Assembly: GCF_964204645.1 (NCBI RefSeq)
Contig: NW_027437476.1
Span: forward strand, 1 to 60,000
DNA length: 60,000 bases
From: Tubulanus polymorphus
Taxonomy: Eukaryota > Animalia > Nemertea
Direction: 5' to 3'
Shown: positions 2,460 to 60,000 of the stretch, in pieces
Layout: each line of letters begins with the position of its first letter
How positions within the stretch are numbered: the first letter of the stretch is position 1
Program-made: the position numbers and the translations under genes
Notes under the pieces: generated by a model
What the model was told of the DNA's origin: nothing
Seen by the model: only the letters and a program-made list of their open reading frames with translations
The model's database searches: none

Positions 2460-3159
2460 TTAAGCACTGCATTTTTACATTTTAGGTTCTTTTAGTGAAG
2501 GAGAGTTTTCTAAACAGACAAAATTTGCAAGTATGTTTATTTAATGTAAATCAAAATTCTCATACTGATTCAAATGTGTACCTATCCATGATTGAAAATA
2601 TGTGTTAATTAGTTTGATGAATTTGAAAGTACATAGTCTGAAAAACTATCAGATTTGCAGCATCGGATCAGAGGAGGCTATAAATTATCTGCCTAAACCA
2701 ACCTTGGCATATGATGCGTACAGAACAATGGCGGCGGGGCTCGGCCATGTTTTTGAATCGTTACTCGCTTGGCAGAAAACGAAATAGACATACGCCTTGA
2801 CATGTGTCAGTCATCCAGCGGACAGATCCGGTTCTGGTCAAGCAAGAAACCACAGTGCCATTTTACGGACCTTATCATTATTCAACTTAGTTCATAAAGT
2901 GCCTTAAGTCGTTTCATGGATAAAATTGTAAATATATTTCGGTAGAGCCTGTTCATCAACCGTCGGATAATGATTGGACTTATTTATTGAACATGTTGAA
3001 CAAATTCGTAATACACATAACCTCGTCCGAAAAAATAATGTAAAATCCGAAAAGATACATTTTTTGATTCTGTTTTGATGATTTTTTTTCGTGAAAAATC
3101 ATCTTCTTTGAGGCTGTTTTGAAGCGAAGGCGTTCCTCAAAAAGGTGTAAAATCAAATT

Positions 3160-4340
3160 TTTTGGCACTTAAACAGGGGCGTCTCTAAAAAAATTGTAAG
3201 CTGTTTTGGCACTTAAACGAGGGGCGTCCCTCAAAAAAGTGTGAAATCTCTGTTTTGGCACTAAAACGAGGGGCGTCCCTCAAAAAAGTGGGAAATCACG
3301 GTTTTGGCACTAAAACGAGGACCGTCCCTCAAAAAGTGGGAAATTACGGCTTTGGCACTGAAACGAGGGGCGTCCCTCAAAAAAGTGGGAAATCGCGGTT
3401 TTAACACTAAAACGAGGAGCGTCCCTCCAAAAGTGGGAAATTACGGCTTTGGCACTAAAACGAGGATCGTCCCTCAAAAAAGTGGGAAATCAAGGTTTTG
3501 GCACTAAAGCGAGGGGCGTCCCTCAAAAAAGTGGGAAATCACGGTTTTAACACTAAAACGAGGAGCGTCCCTCAAAAAGTGGGAAATTACGGCTTTGGCA
3601 CTAAAACCAGGAGCGTCCCTCAAAAAGTGGAAAACTACAGCTTTGGCACTAAAACGAGGGGCGTCCCTCAAAAAAGTGCGAAATCACGGTTTTGGCACTA
3701 AAACGAGGGGCGTCCCTCAAAAAAGTGGGAAATCACGGTTTTAACACTAAAACGAGGAGCGTCCCTCAAAAAGTGGGAAATTACGGCTTTGGCACTAAAA
3801 CGAGGAGCGTCCCTCAAAAAGTGGAAAACTACAGCTTTGGCACTAAAACGAGGGGCGTCCCTCAAAAAAGTGCGAAATCACGGTTTTGGCACTAAAACGA
3901 GGAACGTCCCTCAAAAAGTAGGAAATCACGGTTTTGGCACTAAAACGAGGAGCGTCCCTCAAAAAAGTGTGAAATGACTGTTATTGCACTAAAACGAGGG
4001 GCGTCCCTCAAAAAAGTGGGAAATCACGGTTTTGGCACTAAAACGAGGAGCGTCCCTCAAAAAAGTGTGAAATGACTGTTATTGCACTAAAACGAGGGGC
4101 GTCCCTCCAAAAAGTGGGAAATCACGGTTTTGGCACTAAAACGAGGAGCGTCCCTCAAAAAAGTGTGAAATGACTGTTATTGCACTAAAACGAGGGGCGT
4201 CCCTCCAAAAAGTGTGAAATGACTGTTATTGCACTAAAACGAGGGGCGTCCCTCCAAAAAGTGGGAAATCACTGTTATTGCACTAAAACGAGGGCCGTCC
4301 CTCAAAAAAGTGTGAAATCGTTGTTTTGGCACTAAAACTA
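3160..4340 (+). repeat. Tandem array of ~24 x 48-49 bp units with a 194 bp (4-unit) higher-order period in part
   Basis: Unit ttttggcactaaaacgaggggcgtccctcaaaaaagtgggaaatcacgg. Near-identical ORFs start at 3304, 3498 and 3692 (period 194). Units degenerate toward ~3110. Confidence 0.95.
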
Positions 4341-5439
4341 GGGGCACCCAAGCGTGAAATCGCAATTTTGGCGGTGAATCGATAAGCTCCTCGAATAAGC
4401 GTTAATCCCAATCTTGATGGTGAAAAGAGAGTGCCTCTTGAAGAAATCCGTTTTGACGATAAGATGAGGAATGTCACTGCAATATGTGCGAAATCGCATA
4501 TGTTCAAACATCAATGATAATTTGAGAGTATTCAACGTGTATCAAAAATGTATTTATTGACCATTAGAAATTTCTATCAATTTGATAAGCACAAATGTTT
4601 GATTAATTTTACATAATTCTTGATATTCAATTCATAATATTTATTGATGAACACATGACTTTTAAACACGCGTTGTATCTAACAACGCTGAATATTTTCA
4701 ACGAAAGTGGTTATCGTAATAAGTCTTTATTTCATAAAATATGTACACACCAGGTGTAAAAAGAACATACACAATTAACAACAAGTTCATATACATGGAA
4801 AAAGTGTCACCGTATGTATAATCTGAATGCATTATGATTATGGCATAGATTAGAAAAATACTCTCACTCTCATTGGCTTTATTAACAGATACAATAGTAT
4901 ATAACAACTGCATAATGCTGGACAGAATAAAAGATATGTACATACGGGATCAAATTAACGTGTACAAAATATAGAAATTGACTCAACTATACATAAAACA
5001 TTGCAACTGTGCAATTTATCGTGGTTACAAAATATGTTTTCAGTTTCCTATACACGGAATTATTGAAATGTTGTGTTAATTTAATTTACTCATCCAAGTT
5101 ATACAAACGGGTCTCACATTATTCAACAAAATAATTATAAGAAGGCCGTCTACTAATGACGGCGGAATGAGAGAAATGATAAATGTTATAAAACATGACG
5201 CAGGCATTAAACATGATGATTTTTTGCGGATGATTATGGTTCGATAGAAAATAGCGGATTCACCGTGTATCCATCAAATTCGAACGCAGCTTATTAAGGG
5301 GAGAATTAAGTACGTAACTAAAATCTAGTAAGTTTCTACTTATTTTACTTGAATGGAGGTAAAACTGGTAGTTCTCTGAAGATTTACTTTATTTAGATGA
5401 AGCTTCCACCAATATCATTTTTTCCTAACAACCACGGCA

Positions 5440-8400
5440 TTAATTTGTTGAAATTGCCGCACAGTCAATTCTATTTATAGTATATTTTCAGAAATTCTAT
5501 GAAATTTCAAATCAGCCCCCATGTCGGAATATGATAACAAATGACTTGAGTTACAATGTACTAGTAAGAAAAATTCAAATTAAGAATTTAAAATACACAA
5601 ATAACTGTTCATCTGAAAAATTCTAAGACAAGATTATCAGTACACCTAATGTAAGATCTTTGGACGGTATCGCGGGATAAGTCCTCTTAAAGTCACTTTA
5701 AGACGCAACGGTTATTGTCGAAATTCGATATTCTGCAAATCGAACTTAGTACAAAGAGGAAAGCATTTTTTCACTCAAATTTCTCTGTCAAATTCGAGAC
5801 AAGCAAATTCATTTGTTTTTCTATAGAAATCGCTTAAACATATTTCAAAGTTAAGTCTTCACTCAATATCTATTGAATCGACATAAAACAGGCAGCACTC
5901 TGAGGGTTTTCTTTATCTATTTGGCAAGTAAGAGTTTTTTTCTGCTAGTCTAAAGAAGCGACCCGATGAAGCTTCTATAAACTAGTAGCGATAGATCGTA
6001 TACATCAAATAAATGTAGACTACCAACAGAGTACTACCTGTTTAACGTCAATTCTTTTGGTTAATGAATTTCGGTCAATTTATTCTGGTTAAAACGGCTT
6101 GCTTCTTCTTAATTTTACCTATGAATATATGTAGACTTTATATCATTCTAATCATTTCAAAATATCGTATAGCACTTAATTGAACGAATAATGATTATCA
6201 TTGAGCGCTAAGTAAACTAAACCCATTTTCCTGGCAATCACGGAACTTATTTGTTGAAATTTTCGCACAGGCAATTCTAATTATAGTATGTTTTCAGTGA
6301 TCCTATGAAATGTCAAATCAGCCCCATTGTCGGAATATGATAACGAATGACTGAGTTACAATGTACTAGTAAGAAATATTCAGATTAGGAATTAAATACA
6401 CAAATAACTGTTCATCTGAAAAATCAAAGACAAGATTATCAGTACACCTAATGTAAGACTCTGGCGCCCAATAAACTTCCTATCAGCGAAACAGAAACCT
6501 GAATGTCACCGTGGACCAGAATTTCTTATCACACCAGTTAGAATACTAGACTATGAAACTTACACCGGCCGAGGCAAGGATTTAATCCCAGGACCCCGGA
6601 GACGTCAAATCTTTGGACAATATCGCGAGATAGGTCCTCTTAAAGTCGGATATTGAGACGCAACGGTTATTGTCGAAATTCGATAATCTGCAAATCGAAC
6701 TTAGTACAAAGTGGAAAACATTTTTTCACTAAAATTCGAGACAAGCAAATTGATTTGTTTTTCTATAGAAATCGCTTAAACCTATTTCAAAATTAAGTCT
6801 TAACTCAATATCTATTGAATTGACATAAAACAGGCAGCACTCTGAGGGTTTTCTTTATCTATTGGGCAAGTAAGAGTTTTTTTCTGCTAGTCTAAAGAAG
6901 CGACCCGATGAAGCTTCTATAAACTAGTAGCGATAGATCGTATATATCAAATAAATGTAGACTACCAACAGAGTACTACCTGTTTAACGTCAATTCTTTT
7001 GGTTAATGAATTTCGGTCAATTTATTCTGGTTAAAACGGCTTGCTTCTTCTTAATTTTACCTATAAATATATGTAGACTTTATATCATTCTAATCATTTC
7101 AAAATATCGTATAGCACTTAATTGAACGAATAATGATTATCATTGAGCGCTAAGTAAACTAAACCCATTTTCCTGGCAATCACGGAACTTATTTGTTGAA
7201 ATTTTCGCACAGGCAATTCTAATTATAGTATGTTTTCAGTGATCCTATGAAATGTCAAATCAGCCCCATTGTCGGAATATGATAACGAATGACTGAGTTA
7301 CAATGTACTAGTAAGAAATATTCAGATTAGGAATTAAATACACAAATAACTGTTCATCTGAAAAATCAAAGACAAGATTATCAGTACACCTAATGTAAGA
7401 CTCTGGCGCCCAATAAACTTCCTATCAGCGAAACAGAAACCTGAATGTCACCGTGGACCAGAATTTCTTATCACACCAGTTAGAATACTAGACTATGAAA
7501 CTTACACCGGCCGAGGCAAGGATTTAATCCCAGGACCCCGGAGACGTCAAATCTTTGGACAATATCGCGAGATAGGTCCTCTTAAAGTCGGATATTGAGA
7601 CGCAACGGTTATTGTCGAAATTCGATAATCTGCAAATCGAACTTAGTACAAAGTGGAAAACATTTTTTCACTAAAATTCGAGACAAGCAAATTGATTTGT
7701 TTTTCTATAGAAATCGCTTAAACCTATTTCAAAATTAAGTCTTAACTCAATATCTATTGAATTGACATAAAACAGGCAGCACTCTGAGGGTTTTCTTTAT
7801 CTATTGGGCAAGTAAGAGTTTTTTTCTGCTAGTCTAAAGAAGCGACCCGATGAAGCTTCTATAAACTAGTAGCGATAGATCGTATATATCAAATAAATGT
7901 AGACTACCTACAGAGTACTACCTGTTTAACGTCAATTCTTTTGGTTAATGAATTTCGGTCAATTTATTTTGGTTAAAACGGCTTGCTTCTTCTTAATTTT
8001 ACCTATAAATATATGTAGACTTTATATCATTCTAATCATTTCAAAATATCGTATAGCACTTAATTGAACGAATAATGTTTATTATTAAGCGCTAAGTAAA
8101 CTAAACCCATTTTCCTGGCAATCACGGAACTTATTTGTTGAAATTTTCGCACAGACAATTCTAATTATAGTATGTTTTCAGTGATTCTATGAAATGTCAA
8201 ATCAGCCCCATTGTCGGAATATGATAACGAATGACTGAGTTACAATGTACTAGTAAGAAATATTCAGATTAGGAATTAAATACACAAATAACTGTTCATC
8301 TGAAAAATCAAAGACAAGATTATCAGTACACCTAATGTAAGACTCTGGCGCCCAATAAACTTCCTATCAGCGAAACAGAAACCTGAATGTCACCGTGGAC

Positions 8401-9103
8401 CAGAATTTCTTATCACACCAGTTAGAATACTAGACTATGAAACTTACACCGGCCGAGGCAAGGATTTAATCCCAGGACCCCGGAGACGTCAAATCTTTGG
8501 ACAATATCGCGAGATAGGTCCTCTTAAAGTCGGATATTAAGATGCAACAGTTAATGTCGAAATTCGATAATCTGCAAATCGAACTTAGTACAAAGTGGAA
8601 AACATTTTTTCACTCAAATTTATCTGTCAAATTCGAGACAAGCAAATTGATTTGTTTTTCTATAGAAATCGCTTTAACATATTTCAAAATTAAGTCTTAA
8701 CTCAATATCTATTGAATTGACAGGCAGCACTTTGAGGGTTTTCTTTATCTATTTGGCAAGTACGATTTTTTTCTGCTAGTCTAAAGAAGCGACCCGATGA
8801 AGCTTCTATAAACTAGTAGCGATAGATCGTATATATCAAATAAATGTAGACTACCTACAGAGTACTACCTGTTTAACGTCAATTCTTTTGGTTAATGAAT
8901 TTCGGTCAATTTATTCTGTTTAAAACGGCTTGCTTCTTCTTAATTTTACCTATAAATTTACCCATTCTAATCATTTCAAAATATCGTATAGCACTTAATT
9001 GAACGAATAATGTTTATTATTAAGCGCCAAGTAATCTAAACCCATTTTCCTGGCAATCACGGAACTTATTTGTTGAATTTTCAGTGATTCTATGAAATGT
9101 CAA
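5440..9103 (+). repeat. Tandem array of ~4 x 942-947 bp units
   Basis: Marker acccgatgaagcttc at 5961, 6903, 7845 and 8792. The outermost unit lacks the ~140 bp ctctggcgccc...gacgtcaa segment. Confidence 0.95.
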
Positions 9104-10295: not shown

Positions 10296-13200
10296 TCACA
10301 CAGTTATCTGTAAAGAAAATATAAGATTAGACAATAGTCCTTTCATATTAAAGCAGCTTTTTGCTAAAGCAGCATCTCACTGAAACTTCAACAAAAATAA
10401 TTCAAAAATAGAAATAAAACATACCACTGGATTATCTGTTCCTGCAACTTGTTGAAGCAGGTTAGCAGGAGTTTCTGGCACTGCATCAATCAGATCCGAC
10501 AACTGATATTTCTTAAAACGAGGCAGAAACCAGTATGCATCTGCCATTGAATGGTTCTCCAAAAATTTCTTGTCATGTTGTAGTCTTTTTATGGTGTCAA
10601 TGTATCTTGTCCACCAGTTCACCGTATTATCGTCCAAAAAGTTTTTCCATTTGTTTAGATTAGTAAGATATTTGCTTGATAAAAAGTCATCATAACATTG
10701 AATCAAAATTTCTGGCCGACCGACAGGTATTGAATTCAATAGTCCACCTCTCAATACACGCCATGTGCCCGAACTTGACTTTCTATAAAATAAACTGCAG
10801 CCATCCTCTGTTTTGCGGAAGCAAAAATTTCTTATCTTTGAATGCCCAGATATATTTCTAATATGGGGCTCAAGCCACGCCCTTATATCAAAAAGACCAT
10901 TCAAAAATTGACCACCGATTAATTTCTGCAGCATCGCGTCAAGGGTTAAAGCTTCCTCCTTTCGTAAAGTTCCTGCGATTACCGAAAACATTTGATCAAC
11001 ATCCTCGTGTGTGTGACCGACAGATAGAAATGATAGATTTGTCTGCAAAATAGAATCATGACAGTAGGGAGGTGAAGAAAGGCAAGGCAAAATTAATTCC
11101 ATATCAATCTTTTGAATCTGGAACGAGTGATATTCATTTATGAAATAGTCATGTCTTACCTCATGGCATATTCCAAGTCGTACAAAAAGTTCCAAAAAGG
11201 CTAATAGATAGCGATTTTTGTTTTCTCGACATGTATTATCCGCTTGAAGATAAAGAATTGGCGGTAAATGACCATTCTGAAAATAAACATACATAACGCT
11301 TTATCAACACTTTTTTGAAACCTACTTATAGTAAATTAGCTAAAATAGGGGATATGTTGTTTGCTAAATTATAAATTAGGCATCCAGGGATCCTTTGAAT
11401 ATAGAACTAAAATGCTTGACAACTTCTGACCACATTTAATATTCAAATCCCGCTAGCTATGAAAAAGAGCTATGAAAAAGATATTGCTGACCTTGAATCT
11501 CACCATGATGATATTTCATCAACCATAACTTTGTAACTCATTATCGTTACAAAATATGCATAGGTTCCATAATCAAATCATTAAATTTTTCAATGATGGT
11601 CCTTCGTGAAACTTGCCTCAACAATGTCAAGGTACGTAGGACTAAAACATCAAAAGCGTACCATATACGTACAAGGGTAGGCAAGGAAGACACATCAAGA
11701 TAATTGATTAAAGCCTATTAAGACCTTTCGTGGGAAACTTCAGAACAACAATGGCTGCTCGTTGGCCATCATGATACTGATCCGGCCAGTTTTTGGGCAG
11801 CAGATGTGTCTAGCCACATGTATAAACCAAATATCAGCAAAATCAATTGAAGCGTCATAGAACTTTTTCCATAACAACTGGATTCTTTCAAAGGATGAAC
11901 AGATTGAGAAAAAGCTTAAGACTCAATACTTACCACTGACTCCTTCCACAAAGTCTTCAATAACACATTCATTACCATGTTAGAATCATGCGGATACTGT
12001 AAGACATCTAAGTAGCAATACCTGCGCTGCATAGCATGACATATGACACCAGTCACGTGTGTTTTTAACAACTCATTAGAGCTAAATTCCTGCAAATAGT
12101 GTTAACCATTAAAAGAGTATGTATTTTCGTATGGAAAGATTATTGCTTTAATCAACATCGGCTTCAAACTAACCTTAGGAACTGAACCAGTTAAATGAGG
12201 AATGTACGTTTTCTTCTGATCCATGCCATCGATGATTAATGATGTATAGCGTTGTGGGTTAGCTTTAGCTCGATTCCTCCTTACCGTATATGCCTGTCTA
12301 TCCATTCTAAATAAAATCCAATTGCATACTTTAATAATCAGCTGTGTTAGGAGATATGAATATCGATGTCAATCGGTTATATCACTGAATCCCAAAAAAA
12401 TCTGTATGGAGCATCAATTACTAAAATTCAAGGGAAGTGTTTATGTATATCTTATGACAGTGCCTTGCAAAAGCCTACTTTCCTTCTTAACACACAGCCA
12501 CCATAAGAATGGTTTTGGTCTTGAACTGTTGGCCAATTGTGGAAAAATATCTAGTTGCCAATAATCTTAGACATAACAGAAATGCATGCCCGTATTTAGG
12601 GGGTTCAGGGTTCGCTTATTCATGAAGTTCCACTCTGATGTCAGCCTGACAAAAACTGGAGCATGACTCATTTTTGTAAGTGCTCGCTCAAATAGGAGTC
12701 GAACTTAATTCGAGGCAGTTTTTTGGAGACAGAAGTATTGAAAGTTGCTCCTTGTTGTATCTATTGTTTTAATGATTTTCTGGGGTAGCTTTACATGCCT
12801 TGGGTGGCATATTTATCACATATGAGTTAAACTTTCCTTAAAATTCAACCCCCCCCCCCCCCCAAAGACAGGGCTGGCAATGGGCCTGAAATGCATCATT
12901 TTATAAGTACATACGTTATCTGGTCATAATGAGTTTGCCTCAAGCTTTTAATACGCTCTTTCATCGCTGGATCAGTTGTTGCTTGCATCTTACGATTTAG
13001 AATGACGCAAGTTGTGCATTTTGTGAAGGCATTTCCCTTGAAAATATATAGAATTCATCAACAATTACAAATTTCCAAATGAGTGAAATGAGTTGCACTT
13101 CAATAAAAAAATTGTTTGGATATAAGTAACTTAAGTGATTTAAATAGAAAGTAAATATCTTCCTCGCATACCTTCCGGATTTTAACATTTGGGAAAGATT

Positions 13201-13725
13201 CTTTCCATAACTGATAGAACGAAGTCCGCTTTAGGTATGGCAGGTTATGGTGATCTCTTTGTTTGCGGTAAAATTTCCAGACGTCAACCTTCCGAGTAGC
13301 GGATGGAAGCCATGCTTCAGCTTTGTGGGGTGCATGCTCAGCATTTTCGGTCAGGTATTTTTCTAACCAAGCCGATGCTTCGATGTTGACAGCTGTTTTA
13401 GAACGTGCACCCACCCTGACACGGCTTTTACCGGAGAGAACATTGCTCAGTGTCACAGCATGAATACCGTGAGCCATCAACCAAGCCTTCTGACACACAC
13501 TCACACCTTTCACTGTATAGCTTTTTGTACTGCCCAATGAATCCTTTATAAACTGGTGACGTTCTCGCCACGATCTTGACCAAACGCTTCGGCGAATTTG
13601 CAAAATATCTTCTCTCAAAAGGAAGCTGTTGCAATGGTTCTTTTTACAGCACGGCATTAAAGCACGTGCTATTTGCCTTGCTGCTATTTTTTTCAGCAGA
13701 ACGTTTGGTTTGGGATTTGATGAAC
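10296..13725 (-). CDS. DDD transposase-like protein, conserved core (~570 aa; Sola1/DUF7869-like)
   Basis: Phase-compatible GT-AG exons 13725-13172, 13036-12915, 12306-12174, 12089-11934, 11276-11160, 11042-10425, 10307-10296 with no stops. Motifs PCCKKNHC, VCQKAW..HGI, FTKCTTC..H, IIDGMDQKKTYIPH, YPHDSN, LYLQADNTCRENKN, FLSVGHTHEDVDQMFS. Family name is from recall of these motifs. Confidence 0.8.
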
Positions 13726-14172
13726 CTACAAATGATTGCAATACATGTATCAGATTTAGTATTCATTGGGGTAACAAACTTAAACATCATTAAACTCATT
13801 GCATCTCCTCCTGCAATCAAGTGTATGATTAGTGGAACGAAGTGTGTGCACTAAGCAATAGCTATATCCCCTTCTACTACTTACTTTAGCCTATCCCTTG
13901 ACTGAAATGCTCCAGGGCACCAGATTGTATTTTTACAAGGAGCAGACTTGTAGGACCGTGTACCCCTCCCAACTTTCGCTATTAAACTACCAGTCCTCTC
14001 ATTCTGGTAAGTATAATTTCATTTTTTGAACCCATAAGTAGGTGCCTGTTTGAATAGTATTATAGGGGTCAGGCCATAAATGTGATCCCCTTCCACTATG
14101 ATCCCTTTCAATTTATGATAGTAACTTCTTTCTGAATCTTTCTTTATCATGATACCTCCTCCAATACCATAC

Positions 14173-24900: not shown

Positions 24901-24959
24901 ACAATACAATAGCAATACAACTTTAAGGCCTCTCTACGTAACAAAACGTAGTAAGCCTA

Positions 24960-34850: not shown

Positions 34851-34859
34851 TTGATAAAT

Positions 34860-39623: not shown

Positions 39624-42600
39624 ATGTGTAGCAAAAGTGATTCAAATGGATGGACATTTTTGTATGCGGATGGCTTAACGAAAAAGGTCATGTTAAGAAT
39701 CGGAATGCAGGTTGTCGGTCAAGTGAAGAAGTTGCGTTGTGATAAGACCACGAATGACGGATTCATATCGGTAAGTGACTTTAGATTCATTGTCTTAAGA
39801 AATTCACCATGTAAATGAATATGAAAAATTCGGTTAGCGGTAAAAATTCCCAATTCTTCAAATAGGTAAAAATTCCCATTTTTTGACTTAGAGTGTTAGT
39901 AGATACAATCTTAAGGTCAATGTAGTCAAATTATTGATACAATTTAATTCATATTCACATTTACTGTACGGTATAACATGAATATCATGAGCATTCTAAT
40001 TATCGTGCAATTGAAATTAGAAAATACTACAAATTAACAGTTTATCAATACTAAATTAATACTAAAAGTTATCGCACAGCTCAAATATATCGCAAATTGA
40101 AAAAGTGTTCATCGGACTTTACATTACGCTAGGTTGAAATAAAAATAGTTCAAATTAGTAATTCATCGAAGAATTCAAAGTAAAATATACAACAAGTCAA
40201 AAGGATTTCACAGTTCAAAAATATTCGAGGTCAAATCTATAAATACTAGGATAGAACCTGTCCTGGACACGGATTTTATCATGATTGAGTTTGAGTTGAT
40301 TATTTTCTCATCTTGAAAATTGGTCCTGCTTATTGAAATCATAAATTTCGAAATCCACTAATTTAAATACTGGTTTTTCTCCACATAATCAATTATTATC
40401 CAGACGTATCAACTCTACTTGATTTTGGTAAATGTCACTATGTGTCACTCTGTTATCGCCACCCTCTTCAGTCCACTTCACTTAGTTACATAATTTGTTT
40501 TTACTCTGAACTGTTTAGAATTGCTGTGGTTTCCACGGTACCCCTTGGTGTTTTATTGCTTGGTCTGTTTATCTTTATAGTTTTGACACACTGCTTCTAT
40601 TTTAGATCCTGTGAGTTAATATGCTTTGTTACTTGTTTTTCTGGTCATTCCATCTGATGATGGCTGTTAATCAACAGCCGAAACGTTGTGGTTTCATAAT
40701 AATAAATTGAATCGTATAATTTTAAATGCGAAGTGTGGGATTTCTTCATTTTTTATACGTAACGTAATATATAGTGAGTCACTGCTGTATAGGAAAGTTT
40801 CAGTTACCAGGCGCCTTGCCATTTTGAGGCGGTCCCACAGGTCCCGCATTATTGCACATATTTTACAGGGTAACTGACACTTTTTTAAAGATTTTCTACT
40901 ATTCAATACTTTTCTACTATACAATAAGGCTAGGTGATTTCATAATTGGAAAAATCTTTTCAATCTAGTCAGAATTGATGATTTTGATGTTCGCGCACCT
41001 GTTCAGTGTATACATTGCTTCTGCTGAACGCGTGGTACTGTGTCTATTAATAGAACTACGTCACTAAAGTGACGGCTCGGAAATGATGTCTATAGAAATG
41101 AATAGGAAATAAGCTATAAAAGCAAGCAATTCAACAAAAAAAAAGCAATTCAACTTAATTTTATACCTATTTGGCATTCGAATTGAGCCAAAATGCCTCT
41201 TGATTTTGAAAGTCTACATATTAATGATTATAATTAGCTGTTGAACGGACCATATCCGTTCAAACTAAGCGCAAAAATAGGATTTGAATAGCAATCCATG
41301 GCATTTTCTAGTAGACAGCAAGGAACACGGATGTTTAAATCATCGTTTTGTATTATCATTTAGTGATAGTAAGTATGATCATGGTTAGATCTAAGAATAT
41401 TTTCACTTATGAACTGATGAAACTTAGACAGAATTAGCCGCAAGAACAATTTCAATTCCTTTCTTGAAATATACCTCGTATTGGTAGCGGCTTTGGTCAC
41501 AAAATTAGAATATTTCCTCATCCATCCTATTTTAAAACTTAGAAATAATGTTTGTGAAAGATTTGTGATGTATCTATCAAAACTCTTCTGCAGCGTGAAA
41601 CTTTAATCGAAAAACATTATTCCTTTGAATATTTGTTGTAAAGGCTGTAGAAATTTATTAAAATTTTTTGTAGTGTTAGTTTTAAAACTACTTAGTCTTA
41701 AATGACTATGAAAAATAGTAAATAGTAAACGAATATGAATCTATTTATTCTTTAGCGAGATCGAAATCTGTGATCGCTTATAAGACACTTAGTATAGTAT
41801 GCTTGTGGTGCTAAACTATAGGTGAACTATGGAGCAGCAGTAACAGTGCTGAGAGCTTAGCATAGTGTATTAGCTTCATAGCTGCGGATTGAAATCTGCA
41901 TCTTCAATTTGATCGATTTAGCCTATTCAAATTACTCATTGATTCTTTGAAATAGGTTTATCCAATAGACAATAGATCCTTTTGCCTCCCTGGCCAGTTT
42001 CAAAGCTGTAAAACAATCTGGCATTGAGATATAACACGCAAACACACGCAGTTTCCTCAAAATTCAACGCATGACGCTATTTCTCAGCTGTCCGGTTAAT
42101 GACGTTGCAGCGCGCCCCTGCTGATTTAGCCGACGCTGAACAGTTAGCAACGTAAACAACGAAATGAGCTCAAAAATCTTGTTACAAAATCACAAATTGC
42201 GCGTAAACTAAACATTTTGGAACAGAACGGTTGAAGATGAGTGTATAGATCAATAGAATACATCATATTTTGAAATAAAAAAAGTGTCAGTTACCCTTTA
42301 ACATTTTCTAAAGTAAAACCTTTAGCGCGATTAATTGTCGTCCATCCCTCTTTTGACACAAAATTTAAACTCATGAATCGTTAGAAAGGTGACAATTTCT
42401 ATTTTCCGATGGTGTTTATTTAATTTTTCTCGGCTGCAACAATCGAACACAGTTACAGTTAAGATATGTCACTTTTAGGGAGGCACCTAAAAAAATTGGT
42501 AGTTTTGTGTCGTTGGCTGAATGAAAATAGAAATGGTCACCATGCATTCTGACGATTCATAAATTGAAATTTTGTGCGTAAAGCCCGCCGCACACGGCAC

Positions 42601-45600
42601 CGAAAAAACGTTTTTTCCTCGTGAAAAAAATTTAAATCATATATTGATATAATGTATATACTCGAATTTATTTCAAATCTTAGAGATTTCTCCCATAAAT
42701 TTGATAATTTACAAACGATTTTATTCATTTATAACAAAGATTGTTGTATATCATGGAGAAAATAAGCAGTTATCTTGATCACTGTGTTGCGGGGCGTGGG
42801 TGGCATCCTGTATACGCAACTAAATTGACCTTTTGAAATCTAGATCTTTAATTACATCGCAATATGATAACAAGTTTATCTCATTTGATAGCTTTTACTC
42901 CAATCAGGGACTAGCGAGTGCAAGGAGAACATTATTTGTAGATCCATTGTGGAAGATTCCGGCGTCGATCTCCGTAATTATGTAACAACTCATGATTCGG
43001 TGGAATGTCATATTTCGCGTAAACTTCCAATGTGTTATTGCCATCGTTTTTTATAATACAGTTAGCGTTTAACTTAGAATGGTTCAAATATGCACCTGGA
43101 TTATCCTCTATGGCCAAAAGTGTTCCATTTTTATCTCGACTACCATCGAGCCAGAGATTATTGCCCATATCATACATTGTTACGATCTCTCCGTTGCGTT
43201 GGTAGACTTTTTCGCGTTCTATTCCCTCTTTTTTACTTATTATCATACCCTTGTATTCGCAAATGAATTCACCGGCTTTGATAAATCGCGAAGAAATCGC
43301 CCCGTGCCCCTTTTCCTTGCATATAAATTTGTATTCCAACTTAACATCCTGTCTTTTTTCACCAACGTCGTCATTTTTTATATCTGCGGACCTATGTCTT
43401 GTCACCTTCGTAGTTTGAACCATATAACCGCGTTGTTTGTGCGAACAATATTTCCAGCCACGGATACCTGCCTCAGTTGACAATTGCTGAAGTAAAAGAT
43501 GAAAGTGATAGCTATTTTATAATCTATGAAAAATTATAATCTAGATAATGATTTTGATAACTTCGATTCAATTATAACATACCCTACTGAATCTTTGAAA
43601 TCCTTTCCCGATATCAATCAACTTTGGTTCACATGTTTTGATCTTAAGCCATGCTACGAACTCCATATGAAGTTCACGAGTACTCGTGATATTTTCATCG
43701 CTTTTTATTTGTTCATCACAAAATTCCTTCAAGAAGGGAATACTTGCTTTGACGTCGTTCGGAAAAGTTGAGCCTCCGTGGTGATGTCTTGCTCGTGGCA
43801 TTTTCTCCTCATTAAAATGCCGACAATGACGTACGGTAACCTGTCTGCGCGTGGGCGTGTTTTGTGTGTATAATAGCTAGTGCGGTACACTATTCGACGG
43901 GGTTGATTGATGCGTACACATTGGAATGATTTGTCCAATTCAAGCGTACACGTTGATTCACATTGATTGCGCAAATACTTTTGATAGAATGTATGTATAT
44001 ATAGTAATAATCCCCTGGTAAATATCCCCCCCCCCCCGGTAAAAATCCCTCTCAACGGGTAAAAACCCATTTCAGTTTTCTATCATATTTAAGTATAAGT
44101 CCTAAATGAAAATAGATTATACTTTTTAACAATAATATTCAGGAATATATATGTAAACCGCCTATCCCAAAGAGGAATATCGGTAGCCAATCTTTTAGCT
44201 TTATCTCACCAACACTATAATCTTACCAATATATATTCGGGTGAGCGAGTCGATTCAAATAAGAAAAAATAAAAAAAGGAAGACTTAAAACATATTTTTG
44301 ATGAAATTTAAAACTGGAAATGATTTAGCTAAAGGGAATATTGTATTTCAAACTGTTATGTTGAACATTTTTTCGTGAAGCGCTCTGAGACATTATGAGA
44401 TTTAGCGCTAAACAATAATAAATTTTGATAATGTGATTTTTATGCACATACGTAGCTTAGTAAAAGTCACAGATTATCCAAGGTGAATATTGTGAAAAAC
44501 ACCACGGCAAATTTAAATTTTTTTATCAAACTATCTAAGTTTTTCAACATAAGAATATCGAAGTATCTTATTGTATTTTGCTGTGAAATCCAATTATTAG
44601 GGGATTTTTACCGGGGGTTATTTATCGGGGGGGGGGGGGTTGACCTGTTACCGTTTTGATAAGCACGATCCACACAAAAATATATACTATATGTCGGTAC
44701 TGATTAAGACGCAGGGGTGGATCCAGAGGGGGTTCGCGGATCCGAACTTTAGACCAAGTGCCCTTTCGAAAATCACATGTGGATAATTCCACACGACATT
44801 GATCTATGACGAAAGTCCACACCGGCCATAGGCCTATATTTGATACATTTTTAAAATATCTTTTCTACTGGACTGTGAAAAAAGAAGGGATCAAGCATTG
44901 GTTCTTTTCTTTGTTATTCAGTTAGGTTAAAATGTACATAGTTCGCTAGTTTGAACCGAGAGGTGGTGTAAAATATATATGATCGAATATCAATTTCGGG
45001 GATTTCGATTAAAACTAGAACACCAAGTAACTGATGCATAATGGCATAATATTTTTCTGTGAAACAACTAACAAGAAATCTGGATAGATTTACAGAATGT
45101 CATGAAATGCCCAATCAAGAAACAATATAGGATCTCGGCGCATTCGCTTGTCGCCTGGTTTTTTTTCATGGGTGTCATACAGCTTCTTGGAACTAATTTT
45201 CTTGTTTAGAATATCTGTAATAGGCTACTCCTCTACAAACCAAAATAAAACCTCTATAAATCAAAACTCGTAAACAAACAGCTCACGGGACTAGATAAAA
45301 CATCTCATTTCACGATAAAAACTTTTACTAATGGTAATGTCACCTCTTATCGTCTAGTTCTTTTCCTTGTAGATTATTCTAAGATCGAATGAAGTCAAAT
45401 GTTTAGCGCTGAATGACTTCAGGTTCCGAACTTCTAGTGGTACTTTCACGCCACAAGCATCGGAGTCGCGGACGATCTTCAGTCGAGAATTTAAACAAAA
45501 CTTCTCGGTCCAATCAAGATATGTTGTTGATGAGACGGATAATGGTAAGTATAGCGTCTTAAATCTAAATTTGTTTTCATTTCTTTCTATCCACTAAGCA

Positions 45601-48600
45601 GGCGCAGATCCAGGATTTTTCCCAGGAGGGGAAAAATGTTAATGTTAAACTGCCGACTAAAATCTCTAATCATAGGGGCCTATTCGGCATATTGTTTGGC
45701 CAAACATAAGATGATATGGTACCATCGGAGCCATCGGATATTTTAAGCTGGTTATAGGTTTTTATGATAGGTGGGTCGTTTAGGTCGCCCTTAGTCATCA
45801 TTGGCGAATGCGCGACTCATTTGAGCTACTAAACTACTATTAGCAGCGACCGTCAGCGAGACCCCGATATGTTGTCAGTTGCATCTATGGGTAATCAGAC
45901 TGAATTACTCCAAGGTTGCATTGGCCCGAGCATGTTTACAACACTAGCCGCGATCACACAAGTGTTTTTGGGCCGGGCCACCCGAGCCAAATTCTAGCAC
46001 GAGACAAATGATTGCGTTTGAATTGCAACTGGTACCGGAAAAAACCCCACTTCGCTTTGTTCGAGCATTGTTTTAGTATCGATTGAATGGTTTGCGTGTG
46101 AACGCACTCTCTAATTAGGCACGGGCCAAATCGTCTCCGAGTGATCGCGGCTAATGTCAGCGACGAAAAATACCAGTGGCGAGTTGCGCACTAATGAGCA
46201 TGGCGTCTGAACGACATCACTCGTTGCTGAATGCACGGGGTTTTTGTCGACCGAGCGCTTCTGCGTCGCGATCGCTCCAAGGCTGACCTACCCCGGGTAT
46301 ATGACCTATATGACCTCTAAATAGAATAGGTTTAAATGCAACATTGCAACAAGCGTTTCAATGCTTGAAACAATAAATTTTCAATATCAAAATCACTTAT
46401 AAATAATTAGTGTGGATGTCAAATAAAAAACTGAATATTTTTGACGCTTATGCTTCGTTGTATGAATACGCAGAATTCCTTTTTCTAGGCATCGCTCCCT
46501 CACTAACTGAAGAACAGCCCGAGTCATCTGTTTATGGTAAATTATATTCCATTAATATCGACCCAAGCAGAAGCACAGTTTTATCTGCACTTAACACGAA
46601 AATGTCTTAATGTTTTAGATTTTGGACACGATATTCCAGAACATTTTACAAGTAAGTAGAGTATGATGGATGCTTTAGAAGCTTCATTAATGCAATCCCT
46701 TTAGCATTCAAACATACCATATTCAACAATTAAGATTAATCAATCCATAACGATTAAATTTTAAAATATTTCCTTTATAATTCCTCAATTTTTAATTTCC
46801 GTTATAGGTCAATCAGTTGAATCAGCGAATGAAACGAGTGAAAGTGAGTACCGGTAATTGTAAAATGAAAGCAGAATAATGACGCCTAATATGTTTTATA
46901 TGTAATGGGTTTATCAAATTACTTGAATTATCATATGAATAACATGTTTCCTGCCCACAGGTCAAGAAATCGAACCTCAGACATCGCGTGAGTTACTAGC
47001 AAGTACGTTATATTTAAAATTATTTTTGAATTGAAAAATAATCCATATGCCATCTAAAAGATTACCTGAAACCACCTTCAAAATAAATAGATAGTATATG
47101 TAGGAATATCAAATGAGCATGATTTATCTAATATCACCTGAAACATTGTAGGAACGCGTTTGCTGAAAGATGATACTATGAAATTCTTCATAGGTGAGCT
47201 TAAAAGTTATCCTGAAAAACGAGATCTCTAGATTCCCCTTTGTACGATGGTTGGGTAATTGAAATCCCTCCCGGTTGTGCAAACTGCTCTTGAGACAATA
47301 ACGTCAATTTCTATGTGTCTTAATTCGAGCTAATTTTAATGATCATTTACGAAAAATAACATCTTGTGATATTTCGAAAGACGAATAACTCGCGCCGATA
47401 AACCTCATTAAGAAATTTTATCTGACCAACTGTAGGAACTCAGCCAGTACCTGCGTCAAAAATTCGACAGACAGAATGGTGCCGTTCAGTGCGGGAATTG
47501 AACGGCGATCATGTTTCTTATCTCGAAAAACAGTTTCTCGAGAATCCCGCATTCTATACAATAATGTTGGTGCGGCAGGATGGAGCGGGAGAATTCGAGG
47601 TTATCGGAGGAAATCACACTCTGGCGGCGCTAAACAGAGTTCTATTAAAAGAAGGTAAGATGATTTCTGATCCCTGTCGTGATGACGTAAAAATTGAATT
47701 ATTGCAACCAAGTCCCATTTATTCTTTTCAGATCTAGGAGATAAACGAAAGGTTTATGAGACGCCGATATGCAGCGTATACTCCGCCCAGATGCCGGATG
47801 ATTTAGCGAGATTTCTGGCTGCCGACCATAATCTGGCACACTCCCGGATACTTGACACTAAGTATACCGACTTGGTTCGGTCAGCCAGAATCGTTCTCCT
47901 TCAACTCGAAGGAAAATCTGACTTCGGGGAAGAAATCGCGGCTCGAAAAGAGATAATTCAGAGATGGAAAGCTTCTCTAGAAGTTATGTTTGGTCTCAAT
48001 GTAAGTTTTCAAATACTTGTATTAGAATAAAACACTCTAATCCGTCTAAACTATAGAGATAAGTGGAGAAGTTCCCCAATAGAGTAGTATGATAGGTTTA
48101 GTATATTGCATTAATGTGACTTGTATAGTTTGGACGATTTAAAATGGTTCTTATAAACAGGTATCAGTTAAAATGATCCTTCCAATCTAAATTTGCTTTA
48201 TCTATCAGAGCCGAGAAATGTGGGGTCTTAAGTTTAGTAAAGTATATATAGGTGTCACTAAACCTAAGAACCCCTAAACCCAACACCTAAGAGTAAGGGG
48301 GTCTTATTACAACGAATCCACAACGTTTCGGCTTTTGACTAACAGCCATAATCAGATGGAATGAGATTATCATCCACCTGACTATGGCTGTTAGTCAAAA
48401 GCCGAAACGGTGTGATCTCGTTGTAATAATTGCCATCGTGAATCTAGAATTCTATTATGTGTGACTTCTTTGATTATTTCAAATACTTGAGAATAATGGT
48501 ACGTAAGTGAAACTAAAAGAGTCAAGTCGTTGTGATTTGTGGTTTGAACCGTCGATATAGCACTCGGCAGTGTTGCTTTTGGCAGATCGTTTCCCGCTAA

Positions 48601-54600: not shown

Positions 54601-55727
54601 CTGTTTAGGATACCTGCGCTTTATAAATGACATTATAATTATTGTTATTATTATTACTATTATCATTATTATAAGTTCATAGATATATACTGCAGTATTT
54701 GACAGATAATATGCCTGTTATACTGCTCCTCAGCCCAAGTTACTAACACAAACAATAGACAGACGATCATCATGATGATCTATCTAAAAAAATTAGTTGT
54801 GACTCCATTTTACGTGTTCAAGCTCAAATTCATGTGAAATATAAATTTTTCGTGAAAGATTAAACATACCCCAGCATAGCTCTTATTGGTAAAAATGAAA
54901 TGATCCTTTATAATTTACACAATTTACCGAAAAACTATGGGGCTAACATTAAAATGCATATGGTTTGAAATTGATATTTTCCAGCGAAAACGGCAGACAT
55001 ATCGCTGATTTCCCCAAATTTTAGTGATGAACTGCCATTAGTTGACATTCCCATGCAGACGAAGCAAACGGTAGGTTTTATAATACAGCCCCGGAAAAAT
55101 CCCAAGTTCTGTTATTTTGTGTTAAAGAATATTTTTGGACTACATTTTTCCATCACTAAATAGAATGTTCCCACCATCATGCAGGGACTTAGTCTTCATT
55201 TATGAAATTCACGCATCTTAATTGAAATACTGAATAACATAATAACTTGCTAGTTCTCGGAAACTATAAATAGCTGCAATACGCATGCGTTCGACATGCA
55301 CATATAAAAATATGCTGCTACTGCACTCTGGGTTTTGAAGGGTTTATGGGAATTAGCTATGTATATATCATTAAGATTTAGATTTATTGGATTATTTATT
55401 AGATTTATTATTCTCTTTTAGTTCGATGAAGGCGACGTCCTCCTTGTCGACTGGACAAGATTTGGAATCTATTTGGCAGCAGTTGATTCCACAAAAAATC
55501 TCATTTCCTGCCAAAAGCATATATGCAAAAGACCGTCGCATAACTTCAGTGACGCCTTAGAAACAAGAGTCCTCAACAAAGAGGACGTGCAAAGTATGAA
55601 GTCGGTCGACCTGAAGATGGTCATTTGCAAGGTGCCGAATGCCAGGCGAGAGGACGACGCAATAGTTGGTGTAGATTACATTTGGGTACACGCCATGGTT
55701 AAAAAATACACCTCCCAACATTCTTAA
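39624..55727 (+). CDS. Multi-exon protein: ParB/Srx-like domain, acidic micro-exons, coiled coil, C-terminal Tudor/PWWP-like barrel
   Basis: Exon 47436-47654: VRELNGDHVSYLEKQFLENP...EFEVIGGNHTLAALNRV. Exon 47732-48000: CSVYSAQMPDDLARFLAADHN. Exon 49446-49744 is in frame. Coiled-coil exons at 52.3-53.8 kb (LVTELREKLATTERRLKDIE). Last exon 55422-55727: FDEGDVLLVDWTRFGIYLAAV. Putative first exon 39624-39770 (ATG...|GTAAGT, phase 0) fits the phase-0 acceptor at 45373; the 5' end is less certain. Confidence 0.7.
40650..40691 (+). ncRNA. Minimal type I hammerhead ribozyme (Penelope-type)
   Basis: CCAU-CUGAUGA-U-GGCUGUU aauc AACAGCC-GAAA-CG-UU-GUGG: intact core, stem II, CCAU/GUGG stem I, followed by AATAAA. 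Confidence 0.75.
40867..42297. mobile_element. Kolobok-like non-autonomous element (1.43 kb)
   Basis: TIR AGGGTAACTGACACTTTTTT at both ends; flanks TTAC / TTAA; second copy at 23472. Confidence 0.8.
42932..43801 (-). CDS. Two-exon 257 aa protein: winged-helix-like N-terminus + SET8/KMT5A-like SET methyltransferase domain
   Basis: Exon 43801-43583 (AGG|GTATGT) joins 43486-42932 (ttacttcag|CAA) in phase 0. SET motifs KGHG, GEFICEYKG, YLNHSK.NANC, DIPPNHELLHNYGDR..LPQW. No Cys-rich pre/post-SET region, as in SET8. Confidence 0.88.
44010..44655. mobile_element. MITE-like repeat with poly-C/poly-G subterminal motifs
   Basis: ggtaaaaatccc motifs inverted at both ends; ~44430-44655 is homologous to ~36060-36325. 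Confidence 0.5.
48318..48414. ncRNA. Back-to-back pair of degenerate hammerhead motifs (inverted repeat)
   Basis: Minus strand: CCAU-CUGAUUA-UGGCUGUUAGUCAAAAGCC-GAAACGUUGUGG. Plus strand: CCAC-CUGACUA-UGGCUGUUAGUCAAAAGCC-GAAACGG. Both deviate from the CUGANGA core. Confidence 0.6.
48655..49075. mobile_element. gcgttcacac/accggtctaaa repeat-rich MITE containing a nested Harbinger-like MITE (48873-49010)
   Basis: The inner element has GG(G/C)CCAGTTGCA TIRs and a CTG duplication. The outer motif also occurs at ~38100. Confidence 0.6.
51218..52065. mobile_element. Two ~110 bp copies of a Harbinger-like MITE (51218-51327 and 51957-52065)
   Basis: Shared ttatagactggtattaactttaacc...gttaactcaattg core, GGCC-like ends, CAG duplication around the first copy. 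Confidence 0.65.
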
Positions 55728-55740
55728 TAATTATTTTTCT

Positions 55741-58700
55741 GTTTAGATTACTTAGCGCTTAATGATAATCATTTATTCGTTCTATTATTTGATATATACG
55801 ATCTATCGCTACTAGTTTATAGAAGCTTCATCGGGTCGCTTCTTTAGACTAGCAGAAAAAACTCGTACTTGCCAAATAGATAAAGAAAACCCTCAAAGTG
55901 CTGCCTGTCAATTCAATAGATATTGAGTTAAGACTTAATTTTGAAATATGTTTAAGCGATTTCTATAGAAAAACAAATCAATTTGCTTGTCTCGAATTTG
56001 ACAGATAAATTTGAGTGAAAAAATGTTTTCCACTTTGTACTAAGTTCGATTTGCAGATTATCGAATTTCGACATTAACCGTTGCATCTTAATATCCGACT
56101 TTAAGAGGACCTATCTCGCGATATTGTCCAAAGATTTGACGTCTCCGGGGTCCTGGGATTAAATCCTTGCCTCGGCCGGTGTAAGTTTCATAGTCTAGTA
56201 TTCTAACTGGTGTGATAAGAAATTCTGGTCCACGGTGACATTCAGGTTTCTGTTTCGCTGATAGGAAGTTTATTGGGCGCCAGAGTCTTACATTAGGTGT
56301 ACTGATAATCTTGTCTTTGATTTTTTAGATGAACAGTTATTTGTGTATTTAATTCCTAATCTGAACATTTCTTACTAGTACATTGAAACTCAGTCATTCG
56401 TTATCATATTCCGACAATGGGGCTGATTTGACATTTCATAGGATCACTGAAAACATACTATAATTAGAATTGCCTGTGCGAAAATTTCAACAAATAAGTT
56501 CCGTGATTGCCAGGAAAATGGGTTTAGTTTACTTAGCGCTTAATAATAAACATTATTCTTTCAATTAAGTGCTATACGATATTTTGAAATGATTAGAATG
56601 ATATAAAGTCTACATATATTTATAGGGAAAATTAAGAAGAAGCAAGCCGTTTTAACCAGAATAAATTGACCGAAATTGATTAACCAAAAGAATTGATTTT
56701 AAACACGTAGTACTCTGTAGGTAGTCTACATTTATTTGATATATACGATCTATCGCTACTAGTTTATAGAAGCTTCATCGGGTCGCTTCTTTAGACTAGC
56801 AGAAAAAACTCGTACTTGCCAAATAGATAAAGAAAACCCTCAAAGTGCTGCCTGTCAATTCAATAGATATTGAGTTAAGACTTAATTTTGAAATATGTTT
56901 AAGCGATTTCTATAGAAAAACAAATCAATTTGCTTGTCTCGAATTTGACAGATAAATTTGAGTGAAAAAATGTTTTCCACTTTGTACTAAGTTCGATTTG
57001 CAGATTATCGAATTTCGACATTAACTGTTGCATCTTAATATCCGACTTTAAGAGGACCTATCTCGCGATATTGTCCAAAGATTTGACGTCTCCGGGGTCC
57101 TGGGATTAAATCCTTGCCTCGGCCGGTGTAAGTTTCATAGTCTAGTATTCTAACTGGTGAGATAAGAAATTCTGGTCCACAGTGACATTCAGGTTTCTGT
57201 TTCGCTGATAGGAAGTTTATTGGGCGCCAGAGTCTTACATTAGGTGTACTGATAATCTTGTCTTTGATTTTTTAGATGAACAGTTATTTGTGTATTTAAT
57301 TCCTAATCTGAACATTTCTTACTAGTACATTGTAACTCAGTCATTCGTTATCATATTCCGACAATGGGGCTGATTTGACATTTCATAGAATCACTGAAAA
57401 CATACCATAATTAGAATTGTCTGTGCGAAAATTTCAACAAATAAGTTCCGTGATTGCCAGGAAAATAGGTTTAGATTAGTTAGCGCTTAATAATAAACAT
57501 TATTCGTTCAATTAAGTGCTATACGATATTTTGAAATGATTAGAATGATATAAAGTCTACATATATTTATAGGTAAAATTAAGAAGAAGCAAGCCGTTTT
57601 AACCAGAATAAATTGACCGAAATTCATTAACCAAAAGAATTGACGTTAAACAGGTAGTACTCTGTAGGTAGTCTACATTTATTTGATATATACGATCTAT
57701 CGCTACTAGTTTATAGAAGCTTCATCGGGTCGCTTCTTTAGACTAGCAGAAAAATCTCGTACTTGCCAAATAGATAAAGAAAACCCTCAGAGTGCTGCCT
57801 GTTTTATGTCAATTCAATAGATATTGAGTTAAGACTTTTTGAAATATGTTTAAGCGATTTATAGAAAAACAAATGAATTTGCTTGTCTCGAATTTGACAG
57901 AGAAATTAGAGTGAAAAAATGTTTTCCTCTTTGTACTAAGTTCGATTTGCAGAATATCGAATTTCGACAATAACCGTTGCGTCTTAAAGTGACTTTAAGA
58001 GGACTTATCTCGCGATACTGCCCAAAGATCTTACATTAGGTGTACTGATAATCTTGTCTTAGATTTTTTCAGATGAACAGTTATTTGTGTATTTTAAATT
58101 CTTAATTTGAATTTTTCTTACTAGTACATTGTAACTCAAGTCATTTGTTATCATATTCCGACATGGGCTGATTTGAAATTTCATAGAATTTCTGAAAATA
58201 TACTATAAATAGAATTGACTGTGCGGCAATTTCAACAAATTAATGCCGTGGTTGTTAGGAAAAAATGATATTGGTGGAAGCTTCATCTAAATAAAGTAAA
58301 TCTTCAGAGAACTACCAGTTTTACCTCCATTCAAGTAAAATAAGTAGAAACTTACTAGATTTTAGTTACGTACTTAATTCTCCCCTTAATAAGCTGCGTT
58401 CGAATTTGATGGATACACGGTGAATCCGCTATTTTCTATCGAACCATAATCATCCGCAAAAAATCATCATGTTTAATGCCTGCATCATGTTTTATAACAT
58501 TTATCATTTCTCTCATTCCGCCGTCATTAGTAGACGGCCTTCTTATAATTATTTTGTTGAATAATGTGAGACCCGTTTGTATAACTTGGATGAGTAAATT
58601 AAATTAACACAACATTTCAATAATTCCGTGTATAGGAAACTGAAAACATATTTTGTAACCACGATAAATTGCACAGTTGCAATGTTTTATGTATAGTTGA

Positions 58701-60000
58701 GTCAATTTCTATATTTTGTACACGTTAATTTGATCCCGTATGTACATGTCTTTTATTCTGTCCAGCATTATGCAGTTGTTATATACTATTGTATCTGTTA
58801 ATAAAGCCAATGAGAGTGAGAGTATTTTTCTAATCTATGCCATAATCATAATGCATTCAGATTATATATACGGTGACACTTTTCCATGTATATGAACTTG
58901 TTGTTAATTTTGTATGATCTTTTTACACCTGGTGTGTACATATTTTATGAAATAAAGACTTATTACGATAACCACTTTCGTTGTAAATATTCAGCGTTGT
59001 TAGATACAACGCGTGTTTAAAAGTCATGTGTTCATCAATAAATATTATGAATATCAAGAATTATGTAAAATTAATCGAACATTTGCGCTTATCAAATTGA
59101 TAGAAATTTCTAATGGTCAATAAATACATTTTTGATACACGTTGAATACTCTCAAATTATCATTGATGTTTGAACATATGCGATTTCGCACATATTGCAG
59201 TGACATTCCTCATCTTATCGTCAAAACGGATTTCTTCAAGAGGCACTCTTTTCACCATCAAGATTGGGATTAACGCTTATTCGAGGAGCTTATCGATTCA
59301 CCGCCAAAATTACGATTTCACGCTTGGGTGCCCCTAGTTTTAGTGCCAAAACAACGATTTCACACTTTTTTGAGGGACGGCCCTCGTTTTAGTGCAATAA
59401 CAGTGATTTCCCACTTTTTGGAGGGACGCCCCTTGTTTTAGTGCAATAACAGTCATTTCACACTTTTTTGGGGGACGCTCCTTGTTTTAGTGCCAAAACC
59501 GTGATTTCCCACTTTTTGGAGGGACGCCCCTCGTTTTAGGGCAATAACAGTCATTTCACACTTTTTTGAGGGACGCTCCTCGTTTTAGTGCCAAAACCGT
59601 GATTTCCCACTTTTTTGAGGGACGCCCCTCGTTTTAGTGCCAAAGCTGTAGTTTCCCACTTTTTGAGGGACGCTCCTCGTTTTAGTGCCAAAGCCGTAAT
59701 TTCCCACTTTTTGAGGGACGTTCCTCGTTTTAGTGTTAAAACCGTGATTTCCCACTTTTTTGAGGGACGCTCCTCGTTTTAGTGCCAAAACCGTAATTTC
59801 CCACTTTTTGAGGGACGCTCCTCGTTTTAGTGTTAAAACCGCGATTTCCCACTTTTTTGAGGGACGCCCCTCGTTTTAGTGCCAAAACCGTGATTTCCCA
59901 CTTTTTTGAGGGACGATCCTCGTTTTAGTGCCAAAGCCGTAATTTCCCACTTTTTGAGGAACGATCCTCGTTTTAGTGTTAAAACCGCGATTTCCCACTT
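55741..60000 (-). repeat. Right compound terminal inverted repeat (runs off the window)
   Basis: ~2.7 inverted 947 bp units (marker at 55822, 56769, 57716), inverted unique segment (~58250-59335) and inverted 48-49 bp array (~59335-60000). Confidence 0.92.

Follow-up and report, generated by a model that had tools for sequence, protein, structure and literature searches.

A stretch of 60,000 bp from the genome of the nemertean Tubulanus polymorphus (assembly GCF_964204645.1, contig NW_027437476.1, positions 1 to 60,000; referred to as the window at this full length) contains a pair of very long inverted arms which enclose an unbroken gene for a Sola1-type transposase, a gene that probably encodes a ParB-like domain, and an intact gene for a SET8-like methyltransferase. 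We lean towards a reading in which the whole block, at least 56.9 kb long, is one oversized DNA transposon of the Sola1 superfamily, or a copy of such an element that was immobilised very recently.

The arms are located at 3129-9082 (5.95 kb) and from 55785 to the end of the window at 60000, beyond which the right arm continues. They are separated by 46.7 kb, and their similarity is far beyond what chance would produce, so that the near-identical compound inverted repeats about 46 kb apart, which an earlier note on this DNA had reported from the sequence alone, are confirmed. Both arms, the candidate terminal inverted repeats (TIRs) of the element, share a single compound layout which from the outside inwards consists of a 49-bp tandem array, a unique segment of 1.3 kb, and a tandem array with a unit length of about 945 bp. 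The 49-bp array comprises 25 units on the left (3129-4345) and 14 units inside the window on the right, where it runs from 59333 to beyond position 60000. Identity between the arms ranges from 97.5 to 99.2%: the unique segments (4346-5655 on the left, 58030-59332 on the right) are 99.2% identical, while the units of the ~945-bp array, 3.6 in the left arm (5656-9082) and 2.4 in the right (55785-58029), match at about 97.5% between arms. The two arms thus differ in unit number, and at its inner boundary each arm breaks off at a different phase of the ~945-bp unit.

A core of 19 nt from the 49-bp unit is present 39 times, always within the arms, where chance alone would give 0.01 occurrences. Variants of the 49-bp unit follow a similar order in both arrays, with few units gained or lost, which points to a common origin of the arrays followed by slippage. 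The outermost units on the left are degenerate, and the left tip is placed only roughly, near 3110-3130. No inverted repeat was found between the two ends of an individual arm, and Pfam scans of the open reading frames (ORFs) in the arms gave no recognisable coding capacity. The arms are therefore not TIR elements that are complete in themselves.

The transposase gene (10377-13762, minus strand) reads outward and ends 1.3 kb from the left arm. For all three genes, the predicted exons served as separate queries. The transposase belongs to the Pfam family DUF7869 (E = 5e-40), and the NCBI model XP_074662021.1 (LOC141914665) from T. polymorphus was found to be encoded exon for exon by the window with 100% identity. 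That model has four introns. A fifth, a GT-AG intron of 135 nt, connects a further exon upstream without a change of frame, and with it a CxxC pair that hardly varies among the relatives; six exons are inferred in all, with the stop codon at 10377 and a probable start codon near 13657, in agreement with the start of an amphioxus relative (P0007). The summed exon lengths correspond to about 559 codons, and the gene has no stops or frameshifts outside its GT-AG introns. Homology to full-length relatives extends in blocks from about 13730 to about 10413 on the minus strand. An exhaustive protein search returned 1391 relatives, and those that were looked up, among the closest, come from amphioxus and bivalves; 465 further loci were found in a scan of metagenomes.

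Three aspartates (D329, D369 and D371) are invariant in 20 aligned relatives of the transposase and a fourth, D247, is nearly so. The amphioxus relative P0007 was modelled with AlphaFold (predicted local distance difference test score, pLDDT, of 79): the core follows the order beta1-2-3/alpha1/beta4/alpha2/beta5/alpha, an RNase-H-type arrangement, and D247, D329 and D369/D371 are placed on beta1, on beta4 and on the helix after beta5, the canonical catalytic places. The top Foldseek matches of this model are the transposases and integrases TnsB, IstA, Mos1 and Mu, all of them weak (E ≥ 1.7e-3), and no relative of solved structure was found by sequence profile. The window transposase keeps all of the family motifs (IIDGMDQ, ADNTCRENKN and GHTHEDVDQ). 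The motif set CxxC, DGxxQ, DNxxxENKN and GHTHxxxDQ, compared by eye, occurs in the same order in the transposase of Sola1-1_Ec32, a brown algal element that was classified by its authors via the best BLASTP match of its transposase to a Repbase Sola1 (PMC12477816). Because of this common motif set, we take DUF7869 to be the Sola1 transposase family; a literature search found no paper that mentions DUF7869. The Sola-type transposase with a three-aspartate (DDD) catalytic triad that the earlier note had proposed is thus upheld by the family match, the triad, the RNase-H-type model and the Sola1 motifs.

Several further observations concern this protein family. A second DUF7869 protein of T. polymorphus (P0002, XP_074653607.1), 46% identical, is encoded on a 23 Mb contig, indicating that the genome holds at least two Sola1 lineages. 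Some relatives from other animals (P0058, P0036, P0151 and P0008) are predicted as fusions: one with a protein-kinase domain (P0058) and one with C2H2 zinc fingers (P0036), while two Pinctada proteins are named "OTU domain-containing". These may be chimeras of the gene models or may carry real accessory domains. In two nearly identical metagenome contigs of 13.5 kb (L055 and L058), DUF7869 lies inside an open frame of about 975 codons (7397-10324 in L055); upstream of this frame, L055 has a 158-bp inverted repeat that is 97% identical (1216-1373 and 5261-5418).

The ParB-like accessory gene is located on the plus strand, facing the right arm. It has two supported exons (47435-47655 and 47734-48000) separated by a GT-AG intron of 78 nt, across which the frame continues. 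The first exon has no in-frame start codon, so at least one upstream exon is lacking from the gene model; at its 3' end the gene could reach position 55724. Its assignment draws on relatives of the transposase, sampled as 80 metagenomic loci that were fetched with a transposase profile, 26 of them with at least 1.2 kb of upstream sequence. Five of these 26 (L026, L031, L036, L059 and L078) have, upstream of the transposase and head to head with it on the other strand, an ORF that contains a DGxHR-type motif. The ORF of L036 matches the first ParB-like exon of the window at 33% identity over 78 residues (tblastn against the whole window, E = 1e-3), and a profile built from L036 and L059 places this exon first among 600 ORFs of the window (E = 0.0045). 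Comparison by hhalign of the group formed by the window, L036 and L059 with the group of L026 and L078 gave a probability of 56% over the motif region. The syntenic ORFs of the relatives have sub-threshold matches to GmrSD_N (0.031), DndB (0.14) and DpdB (0.025), all over the DGxHR region, and these are three families of the ParB superfamily. On this indirect evidence, the gene traced from about 47435 onward probably carries a ParB-like domain.

Other searches with this gene were less productive. A protein search with the first exon gave no candidate, its length filter having left out full-length proteins, and one with the mixed alignment A3 returned three metagenomic proteins that are close to L078 only. 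An AlphaFold model of P0156 (three sequences) reached a pLDDT of 35, was unusable and was discarded, and a tblastn search of plasmids with P0156 found nothing. A simple test for the DNA methyltransferase motif [DNS]PP[YFW] was negative in all plus-strand frames between 44 and 56 kb, a region where the exons are incompletely defined, and the ORFs downstream of the ParB-like exons have no Pfam match to a methyltransferase. One of the ORFs in this region (55422-55724, plus strand, 101 codons) stops 60 bp before the right arm and has no homologue in Pfam, the PDB or the metagenomic loci; it may represent the final exon of the ParB-like gene or simply noise. A Tudor-like reading of this ORF, which was suggested by its sequence pattern, was dropped as there was no match at all.

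The SET gene (42932-43801, minus strand) lies between the other two. It is intact, with two exons (43801 to about 43583 and about 43486 to 42935), and encodes a protein of about 257 residues with a Pfam SET domain (E = 4e-15). KMT5A/SET8 occupies the first ten places among the PDB matches (E = 2.4e-7), in accordance with the earlier note, which had named the product a SET8-like histone methyltransferase. The cofactor and catalytic motifs (NHS and the C-terminal Tyr-Gly) align with those of KMT5A/SET8, and the protein stops shortly after the SET domain, as SET8 does. Compared with KMT5A/SET8, however, the window gene is probably a divergent, lineage-specific copy rather than the host orthologue, as the match reaches only E = 2.4e-7 and one relative was found. 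That relative, the only one in a word-based search of 5.8 billion proteins, is XP_074661618.1 (P0155; LOC141914251) from T. polymorphus itself, encoded on an 11.5 Mb contig. It is identical to the window protein at 247 of 250 aligned residues (~99%) and has the intron in common, which reveals a near-identical second copy of the SET gene at another annotated locus. XP_074661618.1 is without seven residues within the SET domain that the window copy keeps, aligned with SET8; these residues were either deleted from the paralogue or excluded by another choice of splice site in its gene model.

Elements of the Sola superfamily have DDD transposases, produce target-site duplications of 4 bp and occur in a wide range of hosts, metazoans among them (Bao et al. 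2009; summary in PMC10741241). Their size is mostly 2-9 kb, with some exceeding 15 kb, and their TIRs measure 11-1124 bp (PMC10741241). The window block likewise combines a DDD transposase with inverted ends. A closer parallel is Sola1-1_Ec32 from the brown alga Ectocarpus, published in 2025, an element of 21,549 bp with imperfect TIRs of 282 bp and a 4-bp target-site duplication, in which a gene for a ParB-like/DNA-methyltransferase protein lies on the strand opposite the transposase; its family has about 2000 copies or fragments (PMC12477816). Such algal proteins have been proposed to "bind and epigenetically modify" their own transposon (PMC12477816). The block described here has the same transposase motif set, is likewise far above the ordinary Sola size, is associated with an epigenetic-modifier function, and has its ParB-like gene, for which the domain evidence is moderate, on the strand opposite the transposase. 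It differs in its animal host and in its dimensions, at least 56.9 kb with TIRs of about 6 kb against 21.5 kb with TIRs of 282 bp. The modifier differs as well: in the alga, an N4-cytosine/N6-adenine DNA methyltransferase domain is fused to the ParB-like part, whereas the window has a separate gene for a SET8-like protein-lysine methyltransferase.

In architecture, the arms resemble the ends of foldback-type elements. These elements, such as FB and Galileo of Drosophila, have very long TIRs which consist mostly of tandem subrepeats and differ in unit number between the two ends, and they are able to enclose and transport large internal segments; their transposases come from other superfamilies, related to Mutator-like elements or to P. 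Large cut-and-paste elements with a cargo for chromatin or DNA modification are also represented by the fungal KDZ/Plavaka transposons that carry TET/JBP genes, and by giant algal KDZ/EnSpm elements (cited in PMC12477816), which differ from the window block in both transposase superfamily and cargo. A literature search found no report of a SET-domain gene in combination with a giant transposon.

The interpretation as one mobile unit is favoured by the arrangement of the core genes, as the transposase and the ParB-like gene face outward toward the two arms like those of compact relatives. It is also favoured by the confinement of the 49-bp unit to the arms, the unbroken state of the transposase gene, the existence of a second SET copy elsewhere in the genome, and the precedent of a giant Sola1 element whose ParB-like accessory gene lies opposite the transposase (PMC12477816). 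Several points weigh against it. The right terminus lies beyond base 60000, so neither a shared tip nor a target-site duplication can be read; nor did the relatives supply a family-typical tip or duplication, since most TIR matches in the 80 metagenomic loci were of low complexity and no complete element stood out clearly. The arms are seen in a single copy, and so is the transposase, the 90%-identity cluster of XP_074662021.1 having a single member. The unit would be 2.6 times as long as the algal giant, and its arms are about five times the longest TIR reported for Sola elements (1124 bp). The additional SET copy might have arisen by ordinary gene duplication. The remaining points concern the ParB-like gene. 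The earlier note had described two large outward-pointing genes that end beside the repeats and a third gene between them; all three genes are present, with the transposase 1.3 kb from its arm, but for the ParB-like gene the support is restricted to two exons, and its start codon and 3' part were not found. The ParB/Srx-like label given in that note retains the motif, weak profile matches and synteny in its favour, without the backing of a significant Pfam or PDB match for either exon. A four-sequence profile likewise has no match in Pfam or the PDB, the PDB searches with this profile, with the exons and with the ORF at 55422-55724 all remaining at chance level, and a profile of L026 and L078 alone does not detect the window exon.

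The most serious competitor of a 57 kb mobile unit, which we regard as unlikely without dismissing it, is that a compact two-gene Sola1 element became stranded at this position, that the arms arose by inverted segmental duplication or by local amplification of a satellite-like repeat and are not its functional ends, that the 57 kb never moved as a unit, and that the SET gene is a neighbouring, fast-evolving host gene. This would agree with the single copy of arms and transposase, with the excessive length of the arms, with the decayed insertions in the interior, and with the differing boundary phases and unit numbers of the ~945-bp array, which are to be expected of unstable tandem DNA. It does not account so readily for an unbroken transposase gene, for the outward orientation of both core genes with the transposase ending 1.3 kb from an arm, as in compact relatives, for arms that keep the order of three different modules together with a similar order of 49-bp variants, or for a near-identical SET copy elsewhere in the genome. 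We consider it improbable that two independent insertions of one ~6 kb repeat, in opposite orientation, flank unrelated genes by chance. Repeats built of tandem arrays can disperse through a genome, but these arms have neither terminal inverted repeats of their own nor coding capacity, the transposase and ParB-like genes face them symmetrically, and the same two genes recur as a linked pair elsewhere, both in the metagenomic loci and in the published alga (PMC12477816).

Two further explanations carry far less weight. Palindromic artefacts occur in long-read assemblies, and the window could belong to a small scaffold, so that a false inverted duplication might have been introduced during assembly. 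This is very improbable, since the arms, at a distance of 46.7 kb, diverge by 0.8-2.5% and differ in unit number in both arrays, quite unlike a chimeric fold-back read. Long TIRs that bear tandem repeats are also known in linear DNA viruses and Polintons, and the block might in principle be an integrated virus-like element with terminal inverted repeats (a Polinton/Maverick or a larger DNA virus). The chance of this is minimal, as no polymerase, retroviral-type integrase, capsid, protease or packaging domain was detected among the approximately 47 window ORFs scanned against Pfam, in agreement with the absence of Polinton genes stated in the earlier note. Moreover, neither the transposase nor the ParB-like exon has a relative among viral contigs, and the coding density is very low.

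If the block is a single transposon, it would be the two-gene module of the compact relatives, with the ParB-like gene and the transposase head to head. The middle would then have swollen to 34 kb through nested insertions and the capture of the SET8-like gene, and the ends would have been lengthened by tandem amplification. In this scenario the arms would be the functional ends of the element, and the transposase, by analogy with other cut-and-paste elements, would recognise the repeated 49-bp units at the two tips, cut out the entire element and insert it anew. The ParB-like protein would bind to DNA of the element itself, with the terminal arrays as the obvious candidate sites. The role of the SET8-like enzyme would be to mark the element's chromatin, in parallel to the algal fusion of a ParB-like domain with a DNA methyltransferase. 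The plus strand between 44 and 56 kb shows no DNA methyltransferase motif; if that analogy holds, a separate enzyme of the histone type has taken the place of the epigenetic writer. The full proposal, an autonomous animal cut-and-paste transposon of at least 57 kb with its own chromatin toolkit, in which the ParB-like protein loads on the tip arrays and could also help to bring together two ends that are 57 kb apart, and the SET8-like enzyme marks nucleosomes, is put forward tentatively, as a possibility that we ourselves hold to be somewhat doubtful.

The earlier note had taken the open reading frames and the high similarity of the TIRs as a sign of recent activity. This argument is weakened, as the near-identity of the arms by itself does not show recent movement. 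Unlike long terminal repeats, the two ends of a cut-and-paste element are not made anew from a single template whenever it moves, and gene conversion can homogenise long inverted repeats.

The same note had considered the gene combination to be undescribed, which is correct in part. The core pair of a giant Sola1 element and a ParB-like accessory gene is already known, since Sola1-1_Ec32 has been published with its ParB-like/DNA-methyltransferase gene (PMC12477816). What is new in the present case is its animal host, its length of at least 57 kb, its foldback-like, tandem-repeat-rich ends of about 6 kb, and the SET8-like gene in place of a fused DNA methyltransferase. Should the block prove to move as a whole, it would rank with the largest cut-and-paste transposons with TIRs so far known from animals, and would be the first animal Sola1 element seen with accessory genes. 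It would also extend an idea so far confined to algae, that transposons pair a DNA-binding ParB-like protein with an epigenetic writer in order to manage their own chromatin, with a writer that acts on histones rather than DNA and is thus a histone-based counterpart of the algal proteins. The question whether transposons set their own chromatin state would then become approachable in a new lineage by descriptive work. The uncharacterised family DUF7869, common in bivalves, amphioxus and aquatic metagenomes, is tied here to Sola1 transposases; this annotation, and the example of an extreme inverted-repeat architecture, would remain even if the block is static.

The central region between the divergent core genes (13763-47434, 33.7 kb) contains, besides the SET gene, a decayed pogo-like element, an inverted pair of 0.5 kb repeats and simple repeats, the remainder being without recognisable coding content. 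About 25 additional ORFs from the arms, the interior and the left flank had no Pfam match, and Rfam and tRNA scans of the window likewise found nothing. The nested remnant of a pogo/Tigger-like transposase (25857-28724, minus strand) has an HTH_psq domain (E = 2e-12) and a DDE_1 fragment (E = 0.004, below the Pfam cut-off); it is considered broken because the HTH_psq ORF is followed by DDE_1-like fragments in different frames, in several pieces. It is enclosed by the inverted pair (23468-23970 and 41817-42301), the copies of which are 89% identical, lie 18 kb apart, open with the same sequence and have no further copies in the window. The pair could represent the ends of a nested element of about 18.8 kb, or two short repeats in opposite orientation. 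The interior also includes a perfect two-copy tandem duplication of 110 bp (20379-20601) and an (ACAT)n-rich microsatellite with a higher-order period of 51 bp (24687-24879).

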